DNA of 63,983 nt, the filler included, from Pelomyxa schiedti (lineage: Eukaryota; Protista; Evosea): NCBI GenBank assembly GCA_020536535.1. It is 4 parts of 4 records of this genome, joined end to end, with 100 filler letters (N's around TTAATTAATTAA, not from the genome) between each part and the next. Parts side by side here need not be neighbours in the genome. Positions count along the whole stretch, not along the records: positions 1 to 31,895 come from JAHLWZ010000613.1; 3 more parts are not named here. One strand, given 5' to 3'. The notes under the pieces are model-generated. The model was not told where the DNA came from. It was given only the letters and a program-made list of their open reading frames with translations, and did no database searches. This document shows, in pieces, positions 2,814 to 31,776 of the stretch. A program made the position numbers and the translations under genes. The stretch's first letter is position 1. Each line of letters starts with the position of its first letter.

Positions 2814-5800
2814 TCACAGAATGAGTGGGAGGATGTCAACAACGGATGGCTCCCAGTCGATTCCCTTGCCGTAGACAAGCTTGCATGCCAATGCGGTGGA
2901 GATGATGGCCTTCTTGTGCATGTCTGGCACGCGGGCGAGGCACTGGTCCAAGTGTCCGGACTTGATGCAGTCGGGGACGTAGTCAATGAACACCTTGAGA
3001 AGCTTGGCGTGCTCGGGGGCGTTGAGGTCGAGGGGCTTGAGGTATGTGGCGATGTCGTCGGTGAACTTGTTGATGCGCTGGGAGACAAGCTCGGAGATGT
3101 GTGTCATCTTGATCTTCTTGCCGTTCTTGAGCCAGTAGGCCATCATGGCTCCGGCCTCGGCGTTGGCGATTTCGGCCAGTCGAGAGAGGACGTTCTTGAC
3201 GAGCGCGGGCTTGATGGCGACGAACTGGTCGTCCTTGAGCGAGAGACCGGCAAGGATTTCGTAGCTGCTGCTGACGACTCCGCACTTGTTGGCAGAGGAG
3301 TCCTTGTAGATGAGAACACCCTTGTCCTGTTGCCGGAGTTAGCGGGGCGAAACGAGTCACTTGGAAGAAACTAACCTCAAGGAATTCACGGGCGTCTTGG
3401 GGAATGTAAAGGTTGGCTCCCTCGACGATGGCCTTGGCGGTTGGCTGGTCGTCAACGAAGAACTGAGAGGATGTTAATGAGGGGAAATAGGACAAGTAAA
3501 AGCGCTTACGTCTTTCATGTTGAGCATGTTGAGGGCACGGGGGCGGCCACCAGAGGGAATGAAGACGTCGGTCTTCTTCTGGTGTGCGTTGAGTCGGAAG
3601 ATTTGTTGAGCTTGGTTTCCGCTGATCCAGTCCTCAATGAGCTTTCCTCCCTCCTTCTTGATGAGAAGGGTCTCCTTTTGGAAGGATGAGCGTTGCCTTG
3701 TCTGCCACAAGCAAAGAATGAAACCTCCCTCGTGAAGGAGTTCCCTTGGGTACTCAGCAATTGGCTTGACCTTGTGGAACATTTCGACAAGGGCGGGGAG
3801 GTTCATGCCCTCGGGATCGTACATGGTGCCAGAGGCATCGGTTACAACCAGAAGCTTGGCGAAAGTTGGAAGGTGCTGGTTAAGAAGCCTGATCATGTTT
3901 CCGGCGACATCACCATCGGGTCCACCGGTGATCTTGCAGGTGAAGGGCTTGCCCTCAAGGCCGAGGTAGCGGAGGGTGTGGACGAGGTACTGGTACATAC
4001 CCCATGATGTTACACCGTACTCCTTGTGGTTAATGCCTACGTCCTCCTTGCCGGAGATGAAGGCGCCACCAGAGTAGTAGCCAAGGCGGATGGACTCAGC
4101 TGCCAACCAGTGAATCATGCTGTCGTGCATGTTCTCATCGGGACCAAGGTAGATGTACTCTGGAAGCTTGAGGTAATCGACAATGAACTCTCCGTACTTG
4201 AGGGAGTTCTTGGCGAAGTCCCAAATGAAGAGGCAGAGGAATGTGTTGAGGAAGCAGCGCTGGTTGTAGTACATGTACTCAAGGGTTTGTGCCTTGACCC
4301 ACTCGTCAAGCATGGGCTTTATCTTGTCAGCGGGTGTGGCAGCAGCCTCAAGCTCGCGTCGGATGATCTCAGTCTCGAATGTGAGCTCCTCATTTGGAGA
4401 GACGAAGACAATAGCCTTGGATCCACCCTCGGGGATATCCTTGTTCTTCTTCTGCTGAGTGTAGGCAAGATTGTAGCACTCAGTGAACATGTTGGCGCGC
4501 TCAAATCGGGCGTGCTCCTGGTCGCGGGCAACAACTGTCCTCATTCCACCACGGGCAAGGTCGCGGAACCTGACTTGGAAGGAGGTGAAGTTCCATCCCT
4601 TGACGTAATAGACGGAGAAGGGGAGCTCTGGGTATTTGGAGGCACGGTCGAACCCGGGGACGTTGTTCATGTACTGTGGGTTGAGGCGGAAACCAATGGC
4701 CAATTTGTGGTAGTTGTAGGCATTGGTGCGGTAGCAGTTATCGGTGACGTTGAGGGCCTGAAGGAAGACATTCCTCCTGCGGTCATCGTGCTTCTTCCTG
4801 CCGGTGTCGAGCTCGGCAAGGGCCTTCTCGAGCTCAGCCTTCAGTCGGGCGTACTCCTCGAGGTTGGCAGTGGCTGGGTGGAACTTGGCAGCGAAGACTG
4901 CAAGGAGCTTGAGGGTAAGCTCTGGGTGGAAGGCAAATGCCTCAAGGCACATGTCCTCAGTGTAGAGGGCTGCGTTTACGTCGGAAAGAACCTGCTCAAT
5001 GATTCCAGCGAACGCACGGAGGAGATTGGCTAAGATAAATGAGAACTGGTCAAAAAAACTGGGAAGAGTAGTGTACCATGGGAGCCAGTGAATGTGCCGG
5101 AAAGGACCAAGTCGGTGAGAATGTCAACCTTGAGCCCCTTGAGCATCTCGAACTCGCGCATGAAGCCATTGAGCTTAGCTTCGTCGGTGACGATCTCGCC
5201 AACAAGTTCAATTGCTCCAACGAGGATGCACTTGACGGAGAGGGGATCAACATAGGCGAAGTGGAGGTTGGCAATGGTGACTGAGTGGCGCTTGCACATC
5301 TGAGCGAGCTTGTAGAGGAACATTCGCTTAGCAACGTTCTTCCAAGCAAAGTAGAGGGTACCATCTATAAGCAAGAGGTTGACAAAACAATAGAAATAGA
5401 AAAGAGGAATTACTGTTGCCAGAGGCTGGGACAAGTTTGTATTGGACGGCATCGCGAAGAACAGCCTCAGCGAAGAGGGTTGCCTTGATGGCAGCGGGCA
5501 TCACTCTCTCTGCGGCATCAGCAGCAGCAATGAAGGAAACACGGGTGATCCTGAGGGGAAGGCTGTACCCGGGCATCGGGGAATCAGAGACGAAGCTGAA
5601 GTACTCCTTGATGCTTGTCTCACCATAGTGCTACAAAAAAGGTGAACAAAACAAAAAGTGTATTAAAAGGAAACTAACGCGGAGGATTTCGGTGTCAGCG
5701 TGCTCGCGGGCAAGAGAAATAACAAGGGATGTGTTCTTGAAGTTGAGGTAAACGAACTCCTCGAACTCCTCGCTATAAGGGCAGAAAAAAAAAAACATTA

Positions 5801-9767: not shown

Positions 9768-12700
9768 ATGGACAGGGCTGAGTACGTTGACCTGCTTGCC
9801 AGGCTTATTTCGCATACCATCAACCTTCAGAACTTTGGCCCAAGTATTCGTTAGAAACGCTTTTTGAAATTTTGTTCTTTCCGAAAACCCACAACAAACG
9901 GTGGGTGCCAATTAACGCATGCACAAAAGAAACAGAACAACAACCAAAGGAGGAACCCAAAGAGGGGTTGATTGTTGCCGAAGTTGAACATTACCTCCAC
10001 GATGTCCTCGCTCAACCTGGCTCCTTCCTCACTCTCGAAAAGGTTTCGTTTCTGTTTTTTTCCATTTCTCTATTGTCCCATTTCTAATGCATCACAGTTG
10101 TGTAACCCGAGTAAACCCGAGCGTCCGAATTTGAGGCTGACGTACGACTCCAATCCTGGAAGCACTCCCCCATCTCCTGTTTTTTGTATTATGGGAGCAC
10201 ACATGGACGTGGTAACCTTACACACAACAACCCAAAACGTAGTCATTCTATAGTATTTACTACTCTTTAGGTTCCAGCCAACCCAGCCACATGGGACAAG
10301 GCCCATCAACCCTTTGAGCTAACTGAAGATGGTGATAAGCTTTACGGCAGGGGTACAACCGATTGCCTTGGTCACGTGGCCATTCTGGCTTGCTTGTTCA
10401 AGCAAATGGCCATTGAGAAGCCCCGCTTGAACTGCAGAGTTATTGCCATCATCATATCAGATGAAGAGGACGAAGGGGCAGGCTGTGGTGTGCATTTTAA
10501 CTGCTGCTTAATTTTTAGATACTAATTCTCTTCCAAAGGTGCCGATTGGTTGTTAAAAGAAGGAAAATTGGACCAACTTACGAACGCCGATGTTTTGTGG
10601 CTCGATACTTGTGGTGATCGTCCAACACTAGGTCGGTTTTCGTTTTTTATTCTGTTGTAATATTTGTCTTCTAGGTGACTCCGGACTTTTGCAGTGGAAG
10701 ATCACTGTTAAAGGAGCCCCAGTCATAAAGCACAGTGGATTCCCTATGGAAATCGTCAATCCAACCGAAGTTGCTCATGATGTGTTGATTGCCCTTCAGT
10801 CATACTTTTATTCAGGTAGTTAGTTACTTATTAGGGCAAGGGCCCGAACTAACGTTATACATTCTCCTATGAAAGATATTTGTCCCGCCGATCCTGAGTA
10901 CCAGGAAAAATACGGATATCCATGCGAGAGTTCCTTCAAGGCAACATCTCCAGTGGATTGTGGAGGGTTCAGTTGCAATCAGATACCTCCGTCATACACC
11001 GTCCAGGGTGATATTAGGATTCTTCCGAAATACAATGTTGTAACCTGCTCACATCAATAAATCAACTTGCCACATCTGGATAACCAAAAGTAAAGGTCAA
11101 AGTTGTGAGAGCAAAGCTGGAGGCTTATTTCAATCAGATAAAGCAAAACCCCTATCTATGGCGCAAAATTCACCAGCAAAGGGGAGCTTCTGAGGCAGTG
11201 TCACCAACGCACATAGATCAGGTAATTTTTCTTTGTTGTAAAAATTTTCTAAACTCTGAACTTCCTCAGTTTCCAATCATCACCTTCGAGCTCTCCACTG
11301 CAGAGGTACAAGGGCTTGTCTGCAATAAGGTTCTTCAATTTCCAGTTAAAAGGTGACTTAACATTTATCAAGGACGATGCTTTCTTCCCCCTCGTCGCTA
11401 AAGCACTCACCGATGCTGGATGTACCTCTGAGCCCATTTCTCTTCTTGGAACTCTCCCCATCGTGGCAGATTTAGTTGAGCAGAAGCACGTGAACCTCCA
11501 GATGGTCGGATTTGCCATTCAGAGTGTCTACCATTCTGACAACGAGTATTGCTTGTTTACTTCCATGGACAAAGGCTTCAAGATGATGAAGGGTTTGGCG
11601 ATATTGGAATCCGCGAAGCCACCTGGCAGAGTCATTCATGTAACACCTCCGCACAAGGAGCCCATGATCAAGGCGGGCAATAACACAACTTATCCAGAAC
11701 TTATGGATCAACCATCCTGGAAAGAATTTTTCCTCCCAGAAGAAGGACTTGGGGAAGTGGCTCGAATGCATAAACTTAAGGTGAATTAGCAACAACCCAA
11801 TAATATTCAACTTAGAAAAAAACAGAGAAATAGGGACTTCCTTCAGCAGCAATTTGGAAACTTCATTGGTTACCAGATAAACCGCATAATGCCACCCCTC
11901 AGTGATGAGATGATAGACTGCTTTAGCATTCCGGCTAATAACGTTGGTGACCCTTTCCAGACAGGATACTTGACTGTTGAGTTTCCAGTTCTCCTTTTTT
12001 TCTTTGCACTGAGTTTCCTGCAGATGAACACCAAACACTTGGAGATAAATGTTTTGGACTACTTTGCTCGACTGTGGGGGATAAAATACTTCCGGGACCC
12101 CGCTAACTCTCCCCCACACCCAGAATCCTACTGGGGATACATGCTAACAATGGGTTCCACTGGTACTCTTTATTTGCTCGAGAACGAGTAACCAAACACT
12201 TCTTAGAGGCAAATATGTATGGGTTGTACAATGCAAGGGACTATTTATCGGGAGTTTCTCTAATTAACGCCCAACGTGTACCTCCGAGGAAGAGTGAGAG
12301 GCATAAAGAGGTCAAAATGGGGCTCGCCATGCGTGCATTGTCAGCGGCCCCACCAGCCCACTCACCGGACCACACTATACAACCACTTGAACCGCTTGCT
12401 CCACATGATCCCTCTTTCACGCCAGTAGCATTTTTCAGGTATTTTTAACGTTTCTTCCACTTTCTGACCATATTTTATAGCGAAGATACACACTACTCCA
12501 TTGTAAAATGTTTACGTACAATGGCCATTCACTCGTGCATGGAACTTGGTAAGCTTATGTACAACAAAAAGAAGTATAGACACTGGTGGCGGTGCCCCAT
12601 TACTTCTGATGGGAACTGGCCAGATGTTGATACAATTCCCGCCACAGGAAAGACCTATTGTATCCTTTCCTTCCTATTAATATTTAAATAGGAGGAACAA

Positions 12701-13992
12701 GGGGTCCCGGGACAATCGATAGTGACCTCCTCTTGAAGTTAGTTAGATTCTTCTGTGCGAAGGGCTACCCTCCACTAATAATTCTCAACATTGGAACAAC
12801 GTTCAAGTCCGGCTATGATCCAGTTGAGGAACTTCGTATGTATTTGATGGAACTCCATTTTTTTTAAATCATGATTCAGTTCCAAAAATCCACGAAATTC
12901 TGGTCGAAACCAAGATGGAGAAACGTTTTATGTGGCCAAAGGGTGCTGCCAGAGATGACACCCATAAGGAGATCCGAGATGGGTACTGGATTCACGTTGA
13001 TGCTGCTTTAGGAGGCTCTTACGTCCCACTGCTCAAAAAAGTTCTCTTCAAGTCCTTTCATTTCCTTTGCTGATTACTTTATGCAGCGTGGTTATAACCT
13101 GCCGCAGTTCGATTTCAGTCTTCCAATGGTGCACTCGATTTCCAACTCTTCACACAAGTTCCTTGGATGCACTGTCCCGGGAGGTCTGTTCATGACCAAG
13201 GTTTATTCCCCAACACCCCCAAACAATATCTCACCGTATTCCAGACAAAATATCAAATTGTGCCTCCAAGTATCCTGCTGCGCTTATTTTCGATCTGTGA
13301 TTTTATAACTCATTCTTTCCAATTCAGGTGACCCACAGTATATCGGATCACCGGATTCTACATTTGCTGGTTCCCGTACCGCCCTCACACCGCTTCTTGT
13401 TTGGAATGCTTTGGCCTATACCCCTCAGTCCGTATTAGCCGATCGTGCTGAACACTGTGTGCACCTTGCCGACTACCTCACGGACCGTTTGCGTGAGCTA
13501 GAAAAGAGGGTATACCCCACCTCCCTTTATGTAGTTCAGCTAACTAAAACTAAAACTAAAACTAAAGCTAAAGCTAAAACTAAAACTAAAACTAAATCAC
13601 AACAGAACGCGACTCTTGAGCCACCGCGGCCGGAGCAACCTGCGGACCTGTGGATTATACACCACCCCAACGCACTGGCCGTGTGCTTCAGGGCACCACA
13701 TAAGGACACCATATTCAAGTACAGCCTTAGCGGTGAGACCCTCGAGGAGGCCGATTCCAAGACCGGAATCAAGTACAACCGCAGCTGGAACCACGTCTAC
13801 GTGATGCCCAGCGTGTCTCGCGACCTCGTGGACAACCTCATGAAGGACCTCTACGCTCATGGATTTGCCTTGGGTACATTCGCCTTTTTTCCCACACCCA
13901 AAAGTTCCCACCCTAACTCTATCTTAGACTCTGAGAAACCTGTTGAGCCTAAGGCGTGCCCTAGGCGCCACGGCACGCGTCGTGACCTCTAA
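9768..13992 (+). CDS. Bifunctional fusion: M20 acetylornithine-deacetylase-like amidohydrolase + group II PLP-dependent amino-acid decarboxylase (histidine/serine decarboxylase family)
   Basis: M20 half: GAHMDVVPA, LYGRGTTDCLGH, SDEE, NQIP, QSVYHSDNEYC. Decarboxylase half: NNVGDPF, YWGYMLTMGSTEANMYGLYNAR, FFSEDTHYSIVK, NIGTTFKSGYD, WIHVDAALGG, SSHKFLG, YIGSPDSTFAGSR. ORF 11316-11789 bridges the two halves without a stop. Confidence 0.85.
13543..13596 (+). repeat. (ACTAAA/GCTAAA)9 hexamer tandem repeat in a probable intron
   Basis: Directly visible; flanked by GTATAC... and ...CAACAG. Confidence 0.9.
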
Positions 13993-14080
13993 TCACCAGT
14001 TGTACCCAAGTTAGTAATAATGAGAAGAATAAACCAATTGGTTTTGGTCCAACCATTCGTTCATTTTCATTAAAAAAAAA

Positions 14081-16830
14081 ATGAGTTGGGGAAGTAACCA
14101 CACACAACAATCAACCACTCCAACTAAATCTACCACAACAACACTTCTTGGTGCCACGCCTCTCCTCCTGTCAGCACCGCCCTGCAACACTACCAACTCA
14201 ACAACTCCAACAGCATCAACTGCTGTAACAACAACCAACGGCCCCGGCAGCAGCGGCAGTGGTTGCAACGTCATCATCGGGAGTGGTGACACGAGCGACG
14301 GCGGAGGCGTGGTGGCGGCGGCGGCTCTGAGAGTCCACGCACAAATCAGCCAGGCGACGTACACCCCTTCGAGGTATGGGAGGGTAATTTCATCAGATGT
14401 GTGGGTCATGAGCCCCGCGGCGTATTCGCAGGCACCGGGGACCATCGCGTTCGCCGACAGGATGTCACCGGGCATGCTCCTCAACGACACTGTTTTGCTC
14501 ATCCCCAACTACAATTACGACGACCGTCGAAAGGCCGGTGAAACGGTGGGCCAGAGTTTCGGGCCGAGCGGGTCAAGTATTTCCTCGGGACAACTACTAC
14601 CACTGTTGCCTGTTGCTGCTGATGACAGTTGTGCTATCGCCGATTGTGTCGATTCCGTCCGGAAAGATGACGGCGATGATGACAGCAGACACATGGCTGC
14701 AGTTTGTGAAGTGGCGAGGCTCACAATCGAGACTGTTGGGAGCACCTTGCGTTGCATTGGGCTCGCTGCTCAGCTTGCTCTCTCTTTGTCGAGCACCTGC
14801 AGTTATCTCAGGAGGGTGTGCGATGCGGATACTCTGTGGCGTGCTTTGTTCCTGTCTCATCTGCCCGGTGGTGCTCCCACAGTGAGTTTGAGCCACCCGG
14901 AATACAGTGGGTGTGGATTGTGGAAGACTTTGTATAAAGTTTTCTGTGCCCGCATTTTGCTTAAGGACGATAGTCAGGCCTTGCAACGTATGCTCTGCTG
15001 TTGTTTTCCCTTCGTCAAGTTCCTCTGCAATGAGTTCAACAAATGGTGCGTGATTTAATCTTACGCTCTGTGACTAACAAGCAAACCATATATTAGTTCC
15101 TCCCTTTTGTCACTTTGACTGTCCTGGTCGTGTGGTGTCTCCGCGAAAATCTACCCGTCGCGCGATACTTCTCAGTGAAAGAAAACGATTCTGGGACATC
15201 ACATTTGACTACGGACCACCGGTGTGTTCCCGCCCACCTGTTGTGAGGCATTTCCGTAACACTGGGAAAAACTTGCAATGCTACCTGAATGACGCAGAAT
15301 GGATTGGTGTGTGAAACATCTTTTTTTTCCATACAAACCCTGTTTTCCAAAGATATTCATGTGGATGGAAAGACATATCACCTCCACTCCCCGCGGAAGT
15401 TCTGTGTTGATTTTTCACTGGTTTGAACTTTATTCAGTTCGTTTGCAATCACACTGAACTTTAGGTGCATCTGTCACCTGAAACCAAATTAAAAGTGGTG
15501 TGTGCACATTTGGTTCAATTTAAGACATCCATCATCCACAGTTGCATTTATTCAAACTAGACAATGAACCCCACTGTCAGACACGCGCACACAGGAGTGC
15601 CAACTCCAGTCAGAGTTGATGAGCCTCTTGAGTTCAGTTTCTTGATTGGTGTGTAGGAGCGAACACATCTTCACCTGAAAAACACAAATCAAATCAGAGC
15701 ACACGATGGATGGAAACAGTACAATGACTCAAGAGTGCAACCTGAACTTCAAAGACAAACAGTTCTCCAGAGAAGTAGTTTTACCTGAGGGCCAGCCAAT
15801 CAGGAGATCCACCATCATCAAAGTGACTGGGCCTGAAAACATTGAAATTTGCGGAGTTGGTTCCACTGTTGAGTTGACTTACCCAATCCCTGAACTGCTT
15901 TCTCCACCAGGGACATCTTTTTCCTTCAAGGTTGGTTCCAACCCACCATGTGACCACCCTCCCACAGTGGAAGTGAGAAACTGCAAATCTGGAGAAATCA
16001 TCCCTCTTGCAGGAGGCGCTTATTGTCGCTTTGTGACAAAATGGCAATACAGCAGCCGACTGAACGATTCTCTCATTGGCACAGAAGTTGAAGCATTCGC
16101 ACAGTACGGTCCTGACAAGTGTTCTCTGTTCAAGTGCATGGTTCCCTCTGTGAAAGTGGAACATATTACGATCGACAATCACCAGCAGGTTATTTTTTGT
16201 ATGCGCCTTTCCAACTGGTGTGGGTGGCATGAGATTCCCCATGGTGAGGTGGATGTTGTGCTTATGAGCAGTAGTAGCTCTGAAAAAATAAAGTTAGGGA
16301 ATGTAAGTTCTTGTCTTCACTTCTTTGTAATGCTAAGAACATCACAACAGGTACAGTGGATGCAGTTCGGTAGTTCCCTGTGGAAAGTAGCTGGTATTGT
16401 AACATCAGTACCGATTGGAGCATACTCTGTTGTCATTTCCACCAAGAAGGGTGAGATCGTTTCGCAATTCCCAGTGGATGTTGTTCCAAAAGACCCACCA
16501 CCCACTTTCGTGTGGAGCAGACCTGGAACAACATGTTGCAACAGCTGTGATCGCACCATCATCACAGGGAGCAGGTGGTCATGCAGGCCGTGTGACTATG
16601 ACCTGTGCGACATATGTCACAGAAGTGCATCTGCAATCCAGCAGCACCCACACCCCCTGATAGAGCACAGGTTCAAGACTAACATCTCTGACTACGAATG
16701 CAATGTTTGTGGCACGAGGATTGGTTCTGGTGACTACTGTATTTCAAACAGACTCCGAGATATTGACTACTGCCTGGCGTGCATTCCTGCGTCCCTTGAT
16801 GCGGCTTCATTTTGGTTGAATCACTTCTGA
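14081..16830 (+). CDS. F-box-like protein with central beta-rich domains and C-terminal ZZ-type zinc finger(s), copy A
   Basis: F-box-like RLTIETVGSTLRCI...LSSTCSYLRRVCDADTLWRALF; ZZ-type CNSCDRTIITGSRWSCRPCDYDLCDICH...HPH. Phase-consistent exons link about 15100 to 15706. The junction near 14940-15100 is not resolved. Confidence 0.7.
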
Positions 16831-16911
16831 TTTCAACAAAACAATGTTCTCTGAAAAGTTTTCTGTTTGTCAAAACTTCAAATCGTTGACCCGGGACATT
16901 CACGAAACCAA

Positions 16912-19582
16912 ATGAGTGGGGATGGAAGCAACCACACACAACAAGCAACAACCACAACGTCAACACTTCTTGGTGGTGCCACACCTCTCCTTACGCCATA
17001 CGGCTGCTTGGTGGGCGTGGCGGTGTCGCCTCTGAGGGTCCATGCACAAGTGAAGCCGGGGAGGGCCGCACCACAAGGGCGCGTAATTTCGTCGGGTGTG
17101 TGGGTCATGAGCCCCGCGGCGTATTCGCAGGCACCGGGGACCCTCGCGTTCGCCGACAGGATGTCACCGGGCATGCTCCTCAACGACACTGTTTTGCTCA
17201 TCCCCAACTACAATTACGACGACCGTCGAAAATACCTGCGGGACCAGCAGGCCAGCGAAACGGTGGTTCAGAGTTTCAGCGTGGCACCCGGCACTAGCGG
17301 GTCAAGTATTTCCTCGGGACAACTACAACTGCCTGCTGCTATCACCAATTGTGTCGATTCCGTTCGGAAAGATGACGGCGATGATGACAGCAGACACATG
17401 GCTGCAGTTGGTGAAGTGGCGAGGCTCACAATCGAGACTGTTGGGAGCACCTTGCGTTGCATTGGGCTCGCTGCTCAGCTTGCTCTCTCTTTGTCGAGCA
17501 CCTGCAGTTGTCTCAGAAGGGTGTGCGATGTGGATACTCTGTGGCGCGCTTTGTTCATGTCTCATCTGTCCGGTGGTGCTCCCACAGTGAGTTTGAGCCA
17601 CCCGGAATACAGTGGATGTGGATTGTGGAAGACTTTGTATAAAGTTTTCTGTGCCAGCATATGTACTTATAACGCCGCCATATTTATTAAGGATGCTCTC
17701 TTTGCCAGGCCTCGTAACTTCTGCTCCGCTGTTGAGCCTCCCAAAATTTTAGCTTTCCCTTTATCAAGTTCCTCTGCAATGAGTTCGACAAATGGTGTGT
17801 GGCATTAATTACTACCATATAAATTTAGATTTATATGGTATATGATGACTCTGACAAGTGGCTAAATTAGTTCCTCCCTTTTGTCACTTTGACTGTCCTG
17901 GTCGTGTGGTTGCACCACGAAAATCTACCCGTCGCGCGATACTTCTCAGTGAAAGAAAACGATTCTGGGACATCACATTTGACTACGGACCACCGGTGTG
18001 TTCCCGCCCACCTGTTGTGAGGCATTTCCGTAACACTGGGAAAAACTTGCAATGCTACCTGAATGACGCAGAATGGATTGGTTTGTCAAAAATCGCATCT
18101 TTTTTTCCATACAAACCCTGTTTTCCAAAGATATTCATGTGGATGGAAAGACATATCACCTCCACTCCCCGCGGAGGTTGTGTGTTGATTTCAAACTGGT
18201 CTGAATTTCAAGAAATTCGTTTGCAATCACACTGAACTTTAGGTGCATCTGTCACCTGAAACCAAATTAAAAGTGGTGTGTGCACATTTGGTTCAATTTA
18301 AAACACTTATTCAAACTAGACAATGAACCCCACTGTCAGGCACGCACACACAGGAGTGCCAACTCCAGTCAGAGTTGATGAGCCTCTTGAGTTCAGATTC
18401 TTGATTGGTGTGTAGGATCGAACACATTTTCACTGTTTGAAACTCAAATCAAATCAGAACACACAATGGATGGAAACAGTACAATGACTCAAGAGTGCAA
18501 CCTGAACTTCAAAGACAAACAGTTCTCCAGAGAAGTAGTTTTACCTGAGGGCCAGCCAATCAGGAGATCCACCATCATCAAAGTGACTGGGCCTGAAAAC
18601 ATTGAAATTTGCGGAGTTGGTTCCACTGTTGAGTTGACTTACCCAATCCCTGAACTGCTTTCTCCACCAGGGACATCTTTTTCCTTCGAGGTTGGTTCCA
18701 ACCCACCGTGTGACCAACCTCCCACAGTGCAAGTGCGAAACTGCAAATCTGGAGAAATCATCCCGCATGAGAGAGGACAAAATTGTCGCTTTGTGACAAA
18801 ATGGCAATACAGCACCCAACTGAATGCATCTATCATTGGCACAGAAGTTGAAGCATTCGCACAGTACGGTCCTGACAAGTGTTCTCTGTTCAAGTGCATG
18901 GTTCCCTCTGTGAAAGTGGAACATATTACGATCGACAATCACCAGCAGGTTGTCCTTTGTCTTTGCCTTACCGACTGGTGTGAGATGTATTCTAGTCCCC
19001 CTAAAGAGTTGAATGTTGTGCTTGTGAGCAGTAGCAGTAGTCCAGAAAAACCAAACATACAGAATGTAAGTTCCATTTACTTCTTGTGAAAAGCTCACAC
19101 TGTCACAACAGGTACAGTGGATGCAGTTCCGTGGTTCCCCGTGGAACTCAGCCTGTATTGTAAAATCAGTACCGATTGGCCCGTACTCTGTTGTCATTTC
19201 CACCAAGAATGGTGAGTCACAATTCCCAGTGGATGTTGTTCCAAAAGACCCACCACCCACTTTCGTGTGGAGCAGACCTGGAACAACATGTTGCAACAGT
19301 TGCGATCGCACCATCATCACAGGGAGCAGGTGGTCATGCAGGCCGTGTGACTATGACCTGTGTGACTATTGCAACACCCCCATTGCTACAGTTTTGCACC
19401 CACACCCCCTGAGAGAGCATAGGTTTAAGACTATCCTGTCGATATATCAGTGCAATGTTTGTGGCACTAGTTTTGGTTCTGGTGACTACTGTCTCTCAAA
19501 CAGGCTCCGAGATATTGACTACTGTCTGGCGTGCATTCCTGAAAATATAGATCCTGCTTCATTTTGCCTGAATCTCTTCTGA
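16912..19582 (+). CDS. F-box-like/ZZ zinc-finger protein, tandem copy B
   Basis: Near-identical blocks to copy A at an offset of about 2.76 kb (15706 vs 18466); same exon structure. Confidence 0.7.
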
Positions 19583-31298: not shown

Positions 31299-31776
31299 CC
31301 ATATTCAAGTACAGCCTTAGCGGTGAGACCCTCGAGGAGGCCGATTCCAAGACCGGAATCAAGTACAACCGCAGCTGGAACCACGTCTACGTGATGCCCA
31401 GCGTGTCTCGCGACCTCGTTGACAACCTCATGAAGGACCTCTACGCTCATGGATTTGCCTTGGGTACCATTCGCCTTTTTTTCCACACCCAAAAGTTCCC
31501 ACCCTAACTCTATCTTAGACTCTGAGAAACCCGTTGAGCCTAAGGCGTGTCCTAGGCGCCACGGCACGCGTCGTGACCTCTAATTGTACCCAAGTTACTA
31601 ATAATGAGAAGAATAAACCAATTGGTTTTCGTCCTACCCTTCGTTCATTTTCATTAAAAAAAAATGAGTTGGGGAAGCAACCACACACAACAATCAACCA
31701 CTCCAACTAAATCTACAACAACAACACTTCTTGGTGCCACGCCTCTCCTCCTGTCAGCACCCCCCTGCAACACTAC
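31299..31776 (+). repeat. Second copy of about 13709-14193 (decarboxylase 3' end, intergenic DNA and start of the F-box gene)
   Basis: Direct alignment from ccatattcaagtacagcc to cctgcaacactac, with a few SNPs and indels. Could be an allelic haplotig or a segmental duplicate. Confidence 0.9.

Follow-up and report, generated by a model that had tools for sequence, protein, structure and literature searches.

The L-methionine decarboxylase of Streptomyces sp. 590 and the eukaryote-type acetylornithine deacetylase (NAOD) of plants and Dictyostelium are separate enzymes that resemble the two halves of a single gene in the anaerobic amoeba Pelomyxa schiedti. This gene lies at positions 9768-13992 on the plus strand of the window, i.e., of the whole stretch of DNA analyzed (63,983 nucleotides, filler included), of which positions 1-31895 correspond to contig C613. 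The Streptomyces enzyme (PDB 7CIF/7CIG, 557 aa) is the closest solved relative of the C-terminal half, and the alignment between them includes the N-terminal segment; however, that enzyme is bacterial and stands alone, whereas the Pelomyxa domain forms a very long branch in the tree, carries extra inserts (e.g., 12270-12400), and is fused to a deacylase of the M20 family. The L-methionine decarboxylase group presumably includes VlmD, which, like the Pelomyxa domain, is a pyridoxal phosphate (PLP)-dependent decarboxylase but stands alone in a gene cluster for an antibiotic. VlmD of Streptomyces viridifaciens converts valine, leucine, isoleucine, and other amino acids to isobutylamine, isoamylamine, and many short primary amines (PMC7794544). 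NAOD shares with the N-terminal half its length, its ligand motifs, and, by alignment, its domain order (a catalytic domain and a dimerization lid). Unlike NAOD, the Pelomyxa protein continues at its C-terminus into a decarboxylase, and no other part of the acetylated arginine pathway turned up in the genome. A further M20 enzyme, aminoacylase-1 (ACY1), removes the acetyl group from N-acetyl-L-methionine and from other aliphatic amino acids acetylated on nitrogen. It belongs to the same clan and performs the same chemistry, but the N-terminal half is closer to ArgE, DapE, and NAOD than to the ACY1 subfamily, and TIGR01880 is a weak match for the relatives of that half.

The data presented here point, with a probability of roughly 0.75, to a real and expressed gene for one polypeptide of 1052 residues, in which a complete M20 deacylase is followed by a linker of 24 residues and a complete group II PLP decarboxylase. 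Such a single-chain gene had been proposed in an earlier note on this DNA, and the proposal is borne out by a frame of 1052 codons and by the same junction in two diverged paralogs, a recurrence that chance does not explain. The sequence comes from a single-cell genome of 52.4 Mb in 5,337 scaffolds, with 7.43 introns per gene, for which RNA read pairs were used in scaffolding (PMC8887013). Its annotation combined Augustus, PASA, and EVM with RNA data, and its BUSCO completeness is ~82%; the paper does not mention the fused gene, and the word "decarboxylase" is absent from its text (PMC8887013). The gene model was built from three-frame translation, tblastn with whole homologs, and joints seen in RNA. 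The joined spliced model was used for a local frame check and for alignment to fetched sequences, while database queries consisted of single exons or of two proteins, P0180 and P0001. P0180 is the window's own spliced product of exons 13-21, taken from transcript contig L018 of ENA, and P0001 is a deposited paralog; family scores for the C-terminal half were taken on these two. Since exon-by-exon Pfam searches gave a significant match for one exon only, families were assigned from tblastn searches with whole homologs and from P0180 and P0001.

The domain junction and its transcripts

An open stretch of frame 0 (11253-11786) leads from the QSVYHSDNEYC motif of the M20 domain through EFFLPEEGL to MHKLK; after a short gap, the same frame resumes with NFIGYQ...NNVGDPF. 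The stop-free read-through that the earlier note had described is present in this form. The reading frame it had delimited (11316-11789) is indeed open but is a mechanical one, as an intron of 43 nt precedes the real exon, whose first position is 11373. Within this exon, the last M20 ligand motif (SVYHSDNEYC) occupies 11523-11552, the M20 region runs to about LAILES (11612), and the residues directly after the linker, TTYPELMDQPSWKEFFLPEEGLGEVARMHKLK, are already decarboxylase. In the EFFLPEEGL stretch, a paralog aligns to residues 28-47 of L-methionine decarboxylase; its decarboxylase start aligns to a Nostoc homolog (P0066) from residue 22, beginning at TTYP. The stand-alone homolog from Physarum begins a few residues before the decarboxylase stretch of the junction exon, and stand-alone M20 relatives terminate 25-30 residues beyond the His motif. 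Because decarboxylase homology starts within the exon and stand-alone M20 relatives end there, the read-through is, as judged by alignment, a true domain junction, with one exon coding for parts of both enzymes.

The genome contains three fused loci: the one in the window, one on contig C792 (L011, minus strand), and one on contig C763 (L012). The last codes, at 95-100% identity, for P0001, a protein of 1034 aa deposited at NCBI as "histidine decarboxylase [Pelomyxa schiedti]". P0001 has the same fused architecture, junction exon, and splice as the window gene, with ~60-65% identity in the decarboxylase half, and its residues 376-516 are 46% identical to the junction exon from end to end. In all three paralogs, a stop-free frame runs from the M20 motif through the linker to HKLK, where a phase-0 GT intron follows at the same codon (alignment A1). 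The linkers are 21-26 residues long and not conserved in sequence, although a Met before QPSWK is conserved. A frame that stays open through non-conserved linkers in three diverged copies is what one would expect if the linker is translated; two adjacent genes would not be expected to keep it open in this way. The predicted junction intron separates HKLK from RNRD, and the identical join is used in the deposited NCBI model of P0001. At 45 nt, it falls inside the range of confirmed introns (42-96 nt), and it contains an in-frame stop in each of the three paralogs.

Spliced contigs on both halves were found in four single-cell RNA-seq runs from one study. They confirm two introns of the M20 half (10488-10538 and 10632-10674) and five of the decarboxylase half. 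Moreover, L018 agrees with the spliced model along its full length, without a mismatch, over 12139-14016 and confirms nine consecutive introns. The introns seen in RNA amount to 11 out of 20, and expression and splicing are thereby shown for most of the gene. One RNA contig is continuous over 11579-11744, a stretch that begins in the final M20 codons, takes in all of the linker, and reaches the first codons of the decarboxylase. Two RNA contigs have loose ends, at 13087 and 12783 of the window, that carry TACTCTGCGTTGATACCACTGCT... and TACATGGG. These apparently resemble the primer or template-switch oligo of SMART-type cDNA amplification, in which case they would be library artifacts rather than transcript starts.

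Family placement of the two halves

The M20 half is recognizable from single exons and along its whole length. Exon 10271-10522 alone matches PF01546 with 46.2 bits (cut-off 24.6), and in tblastn, M20 proteins of ~445 aa, named acetylornithine deacetylase at JGI, align over their residues ~4-446, with 35-47% identity in the catalytic exon. All ligand motifs are in place (AHMD, GRGTTD, SDEE, WLDTCGD, and YHSDNE), as is HSG of the lid, and they align to the ligand positions of Escherichia coli ArgE, DapE, and seven homologs, with the catalytic Glu present. The paralog on C792 likewise keeps all M20 ligands and the catalytic Glu. The lid domain (PF07687) scores 15.6 bits at the exon level, below its cut-off of 21, and the region aligns along the full lid of homologs, including HSG. 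Among full-length relatives, the closest one (P0049) belongs to Atlas clusters that are named acetylornithine deacetylase and are 89-90% eukaryotic, mostly plant, which is a lead only but agrees with the earlier comparison to plant/Dictyostelium-type acetylornithine deacetylase. The closest full-length relatives, which were scored in place of the joined window protein, reach 63-85 bits against a TIGR01892 cut-off of 297.7, and none of them attains the NCBIfam equivalog or ArgE cut-offs. From its motifs and alignments, the N-terminal half is a complete M20 deacylase of the ArgE/DapE type with all ligands intact, and it is of the kind known as acetylornithine deacetylase in eukaryotes. The genomic neighborhoods of two M20 relatives held nothing informative about the origin of these relatives.

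The decarboxylase half carries the motifs GYQ, NNVGDPF, EDTHYS, HVDAA (Asp at 12999-13001), SSHK (Lys at 13156-13158), and PQYIG. P0180 scores 41.4 bits against PF00282 (Pyridoxal_deC; cut-off 27), and its best match in the PDB is L-methionine decarboxylase (7cif, E 3.7e-61); serine decarboxylase (8.7e-22) follows at a wide distance, and histidine decarboxylase (1.9e-14) comes after it. The SSHK motif with the PLP Lys, HVDAA with its Asp, and EDTHYS with the stacking His align to the same motifs of 7cif. The exon of 50 aa at 11826-11975, searched alone, had no match in the PDB. That both halves look catalytically intact, as had been noted from AHMD, GTTD, DEE, the final His, HVDAA, and SHK, was seen again here, and the motifs suggest that both halves are catalytically active. 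The equivalents of Gln64 (in GYQ) and Tyr421 (in PQYIG) of L-methionine decarboxylase are conserved as well. In the work of Okawa et al. from 2021, Gln64 is reportedly the residue of specificity and Tyr421 the acid catalyst. GYQ does not fix the substrate, however, because the motif is family-wide (it occurs in Nostoc and Physarum) and identity to 7cif is only moderate.

On sequence grounds, these comparisons make the C-terminal half a complete PLP decarboxylase of group II and place it in the long type (~550-600 aa) represented by L-methionine decarboxylase. An assignment as histidine decarboxylase is ruled out by the far better match to L-methionine decarboxylase and by the histidine decarboxylase equivalog NF002748, for which P0180 and P0001 score 121.1 and 177.9 bits, respectively, against a cut-off of 305. 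The earlier note had named the histidine decarboxylase group and had mentioned VlmD; the mention of VlmD was apt, given that the nearest solved relative is an L-methionine decarboxylase, but the histidine decarboxylase label did not stand. The family of long decarboxylases comprises more than 1000 members of ~550-630 aa from bacteria, bdelloid rotifers, and Physarum, and includes Pelomyxa sequences. Most members are labeled "histidine decarboxylase" without support. This applies to P0001, whose name is likewise unsupported and, like the genome paper, does not reflect the fusion.

Distribution, proposed function, and competing readings

When the junction exon was compared by HMMER with 1.84 billion representative proteins, a single protein, the paralog P0001, covered the whole exon. 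Other M20 matches in the same pass were 533 aa or shorter, except for a CheA-like protein (872 aa) that is unrelated. No other long relative was returned when 5.8 billion clusters were searched by word index, an alignment of the junction from the three paralogs had no match among JGI metagenome contigs, and nothing relevant was found in the literature on M20-decarboxylase fusions. The earlier expectation that no other enzyme has this architecture held, beyond the Pelomyxa paralogs, in these very large searches. The gene is a new combination of two known families that is present but unrecognized in public annotation. A gene fusion is among the strongest hints that sequence can give of two cooperating activities, and these two well-known families had not been linked before.

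In a tree of decarboxylases, the three Pelomyxa sequences form one clade on a branch of length 1.8, within which the window sequence is nearest to that on C792 (78% identity). Because three fused paralogs exist and form one decarboxylase clade, the fusion is, by this tree, older than the two gene duplications. No donor of the decarboxylase is indicated by the tree, and the Pelomyxa trio does not join Physarum. A search of the genome with an NAOD-type M20 query found NAOD-like copies only in the fused genes on C613 and C792.

Of the conceivable functions, a sequential one in two steps would be the most economical, and it is offered tentatively, as less likely than not. The substrate of the M20 site would be a dipeptide or an L-amino acid that carries an N-acyl (probably N-acetyl) group. 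Hydrolysis would release a neutral or hydrophobic amino acid, and this would then be decarboxylated on PLP, with the Lys of SSHK forming the aldimine and the Tyr of PQYIG protonating C-alpha, to give a primary amine. Both parent families are homodimers, so coupling would be by proximity in the dimer rather than through a known tunnel. A neutral or hydrophobic amino acid is favored because the nearest characterized relatives act on methionine (L-methionine decarboxylase) or on valine, leucine, and isoleucine (VlmD), and conversion of a neutral N-acyl amino acid to an amine is therefore the best guess by analogy. As a concrete example only, N-acetylmethionine might yield methionine and then 3-methylthiopropylamine. 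An M20 enzyme that feeds methionine to a methionine-type decarboxylase is chemically plausible, since ACY1 deacetylates N-acetyl-L-methionine. Any named substrate is far more doubtful than the two-step function itself. A fuller account would have a eukaryote-type M20 enzyme fused in Pelomyxa to a bacterial-type decarboxylase, as a lineage-specific bifunctional enzyme on an undescribed route that leads from an N-acyl amino acid through the free amino acid to a primary amine of volatile nature, such as 3-methylthiopropylamine or an amine with a branched chain, with later multiplication to three paralogs, one of them an M20 pseudoenzyme; taken as a whole, this account is less probable than the two-step function and is put forward as a possibility. 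That the amine might serve acid or redox balance, or exchange with the prokaryotic partners of the amoeba, is pure speculation. If the halves are coupled, the fusion points to N-acyl amino acids as a source of substrate for this decarboxylase family. It would also offer a route to short primary amines directly from acylated precursors, which is of interest to biocatalysis (PMC7794544).

Several observations weigh against a coupled, single-chain enzyme, and they favor different alternatives. No RNA contig or read among the assembled contigs examined bridges 11745-12138, and the junction intron and the next intron (11976-12023) stay predictions for this reason. Within 11500-11950, where the earlier note had looked to RNA for a check, the contig over 11579-11744 is the part that was obtained, and no read or contig spans the junction intron. 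A junction-bridging protein derived from transcripts was sought with residues 380-650 of P0001, and only decarboxylase fragments matched. If the junction intron were retained, its in-frame TAG would stop the protein after the M20 part, and an internal promoter could give rise to a separate decarboxylase that starts at a Met in or just after the linker (PMIK or ELMDQ). The locus would then make two proteins, an M20 enzyme terminated by the TAG at 11787 and a decarboxylase from an internal Met, and the continuous frame would be a by-product of their overlap; the stop in the junction intron of all three paralogs and the conserved Met before QPSWK fit this arrangement. The decarboxylase fold begins upstream of the intron, however, within the M20 frame, the frame is free of stops across linkers of differing length and sequence at three loci, an RNA contig passes through the supposed boundary, and the annotators, working with Augustus, PASA, EVM, and RNA, called the paralog one gene (PMC8887013). 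Two separate proteins are therefore improbable, and removal of the junction intron from a single mRNA that codes for one polypeptide is inferred. Less probable still, to the point of being hardly credible, is a decaying or artifactual locus, whether pseudogene or assembly chimera. One non-canonical GA donor and a 96% copy of the 3' end after an N gap at the contig end could be cited for it, but the full frame is intact, the transcript is spliced exactly as modeled, including the GA-AG intron, and the architecture is common to three loci on different contigs.

Other points bear on the pairing of the two activities rather than on the single chain. In the paralog on C763, the M20 domain is replaced at the first His/Asp, the bridging Asp, the Glu-Glu pair, and HSG, while its decarboxylase motifs are intact. 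By its sequence, this M20 domain is very probably inactive; since the domain was kept after its ligands were lost, an M20 domain is not always catalytic here, and the M20 part can persist without catalysis and may have a structural role. In Nostoc, Clostridium tetani, and Vibrio vulnificus, no M20 gene and no shared context was found beside the decarboxylase, and because these bacterial homologs have no M20 neighbor, nothing independent links the two activities. The chain could thus be fused without its domains forming a metabolic pair: the decarboxylase would work, while the M20 domain would dimerize, act as a scaffold, sense a ligand, or turn over an unrelated substrate. The lack of an operon-type link in bacteria and the loss of M20 ligands on C763 speak for this arrangement. 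Nevertheless, two of the three paralogs, including that in the window, retain every M20 ligand and the catalytic Glu at ~40-60% overall divergence, as purifying selection on M20 catalysis would produce. Uncoupled domains are unlikely on balance, though of all the alternatives they deserve the most weight. The three paralogs, with two live M20 sites and one dead, amount to a natural experiment on a catalytic domain becoming structural.

The products suggested in the earlier note, i.e., putrescine from N-acetylornithine via ornithine or histamine from N-acetylhistidine or carnosine, have in their favor the acetylornithine-deacetylase kind of the M20 half and the name "histidine decarboxylase" that databases give to the family of the C-terminal half. 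They found no support in the genome or in the family models. The C-terminal half is not of the histidine decarboxylase type (121 against 305 bits for the equivalog, with L-methionine decarboxylase by far the best structural relative), classical ornithine decarboxylase (ODC)-type genes are present at three loci in the genome, and argB, argC, and argJ gave no match in the ~82% BUSCO-complete assembly. For these reasons, histamine or putrescine is an unlikely product, and these routes are more doubtful than even the two-protein arrangement.

Introns, feature coordinates, and neighboring sequence

The gene comprises 21 exons and 20 introns of 42-96 nt, 19 of which are GT-AG and one GA-AG. Nine were placed from frame, homology, and paralogs; among them, the intron at 9844-9929 has an uncertainty of two codons. 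Coordinates are collected in Table 1.

Table 1. Coordinates, in the window, of the fused gene and its parts.
Feature	Position	Strand	Basis
Whole fused gene	9768..13992	+	ATG 9768, TAA 13990-13992; exon model and frame check; 11 introns RNA-confirmed, 9 inferred
M20 (ArgE/DapE-type) deacylase half, aa 1-448, exons 1-10	9768..11612	+	Pfam, tblastn, structure and homolog alignments
Junction exon, 136 codons (M20 C-terminus, linker, decarboxylase N-terminus)	11373..11780	+	Stop-free frame, paralog alignment, RNA
Linker, 24 codons, poorly conserved	11613..11684	+	Always in frame among paralogs; length and sequence vary
Group II PLP decarboxylase half, L-methionine decarboxylase type, aa 473-1052	11685..13992	+	PF00282, PDB 7cif, Nostoc alignment
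Junction intron, 45 nt, GTGAAT..AAACAG, phase 0, predicted	11781..11825	+	Frame, paralog splice; in-frame TAG 11787-11789
Non-canonical GA..AG intron, 44 nt	12648..12691	+	L018 agrees exactly with the spliced model over this joint
Longest intron, 96 nt	13510..13605	+	Removed in RNA contigs and L018

No shifted cut of the GA-AG intron yields GT-AG, GC-AG, or AT-AC. The GA donor is kept at the equivalent intron of the paralog on C763 (L012 ~5391), and the paralog on C792 has GT there (L011, minus strand, ~3750). This intron is transcript-verified, and it occurs in a genome for which only GT-AG, GC-AG, and a single GT-GG intron were listed (PMC8887013). In the deposited model of P0001, the GA donor is passed over in favor of a GT located 4 nt downstream (L012 ~5380-5600), because of which its residues 746-773 are out of frame and the exon with KGYPPLIILNIGTTFK is missing. 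Both the name and the model of P0001 in public annotation are corrected by the present analysis.

Most of the longest intron is taken up by an AAAACT/AAAGCT microsatellite (13535-13605), and since this reads TKTKTKAKAK in frame, an unspliced reading resembles a low-complexity protein insert. The window protein and the paralog on C792 end in RRDL (13975-13989 in the window) after a conserved DSE.PV stretch, and that on C763 ends otherwise. Directly after a run of N's, positions 31299-31776 hold a 96% identical copy of 13709-14193 (the last exons and 3' flank), which is probably an allelic piece or an artifact of scaffolding with RNA read pairs and not a second gene. Downstream of the P0001 gene, L012:7482-8268 contains scattered, decayed pieces of a further fused-gene copy, namely M20 fragments, in which SDEE has become TGEGE, and the last decarboxylase exon; these are apparently what a tandem duplication left behind as a pseudogene. 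In the window, the gene that follows the fusion (14081-15058) has a diverged tandem copy (16867-17808), with 78% identity between 14312-14600 and 17017-17329, and neither of the two reading frames has a Pfam match. About 5 kb upstream of the fusion, on the minus strand, a reading frame of 492 aa (3477-4952) contains a Glu/Leu/Phe/Val dehydrogenase domain (PF00208, E 3.7e-10) and represents another gene of amino acid metabolism.

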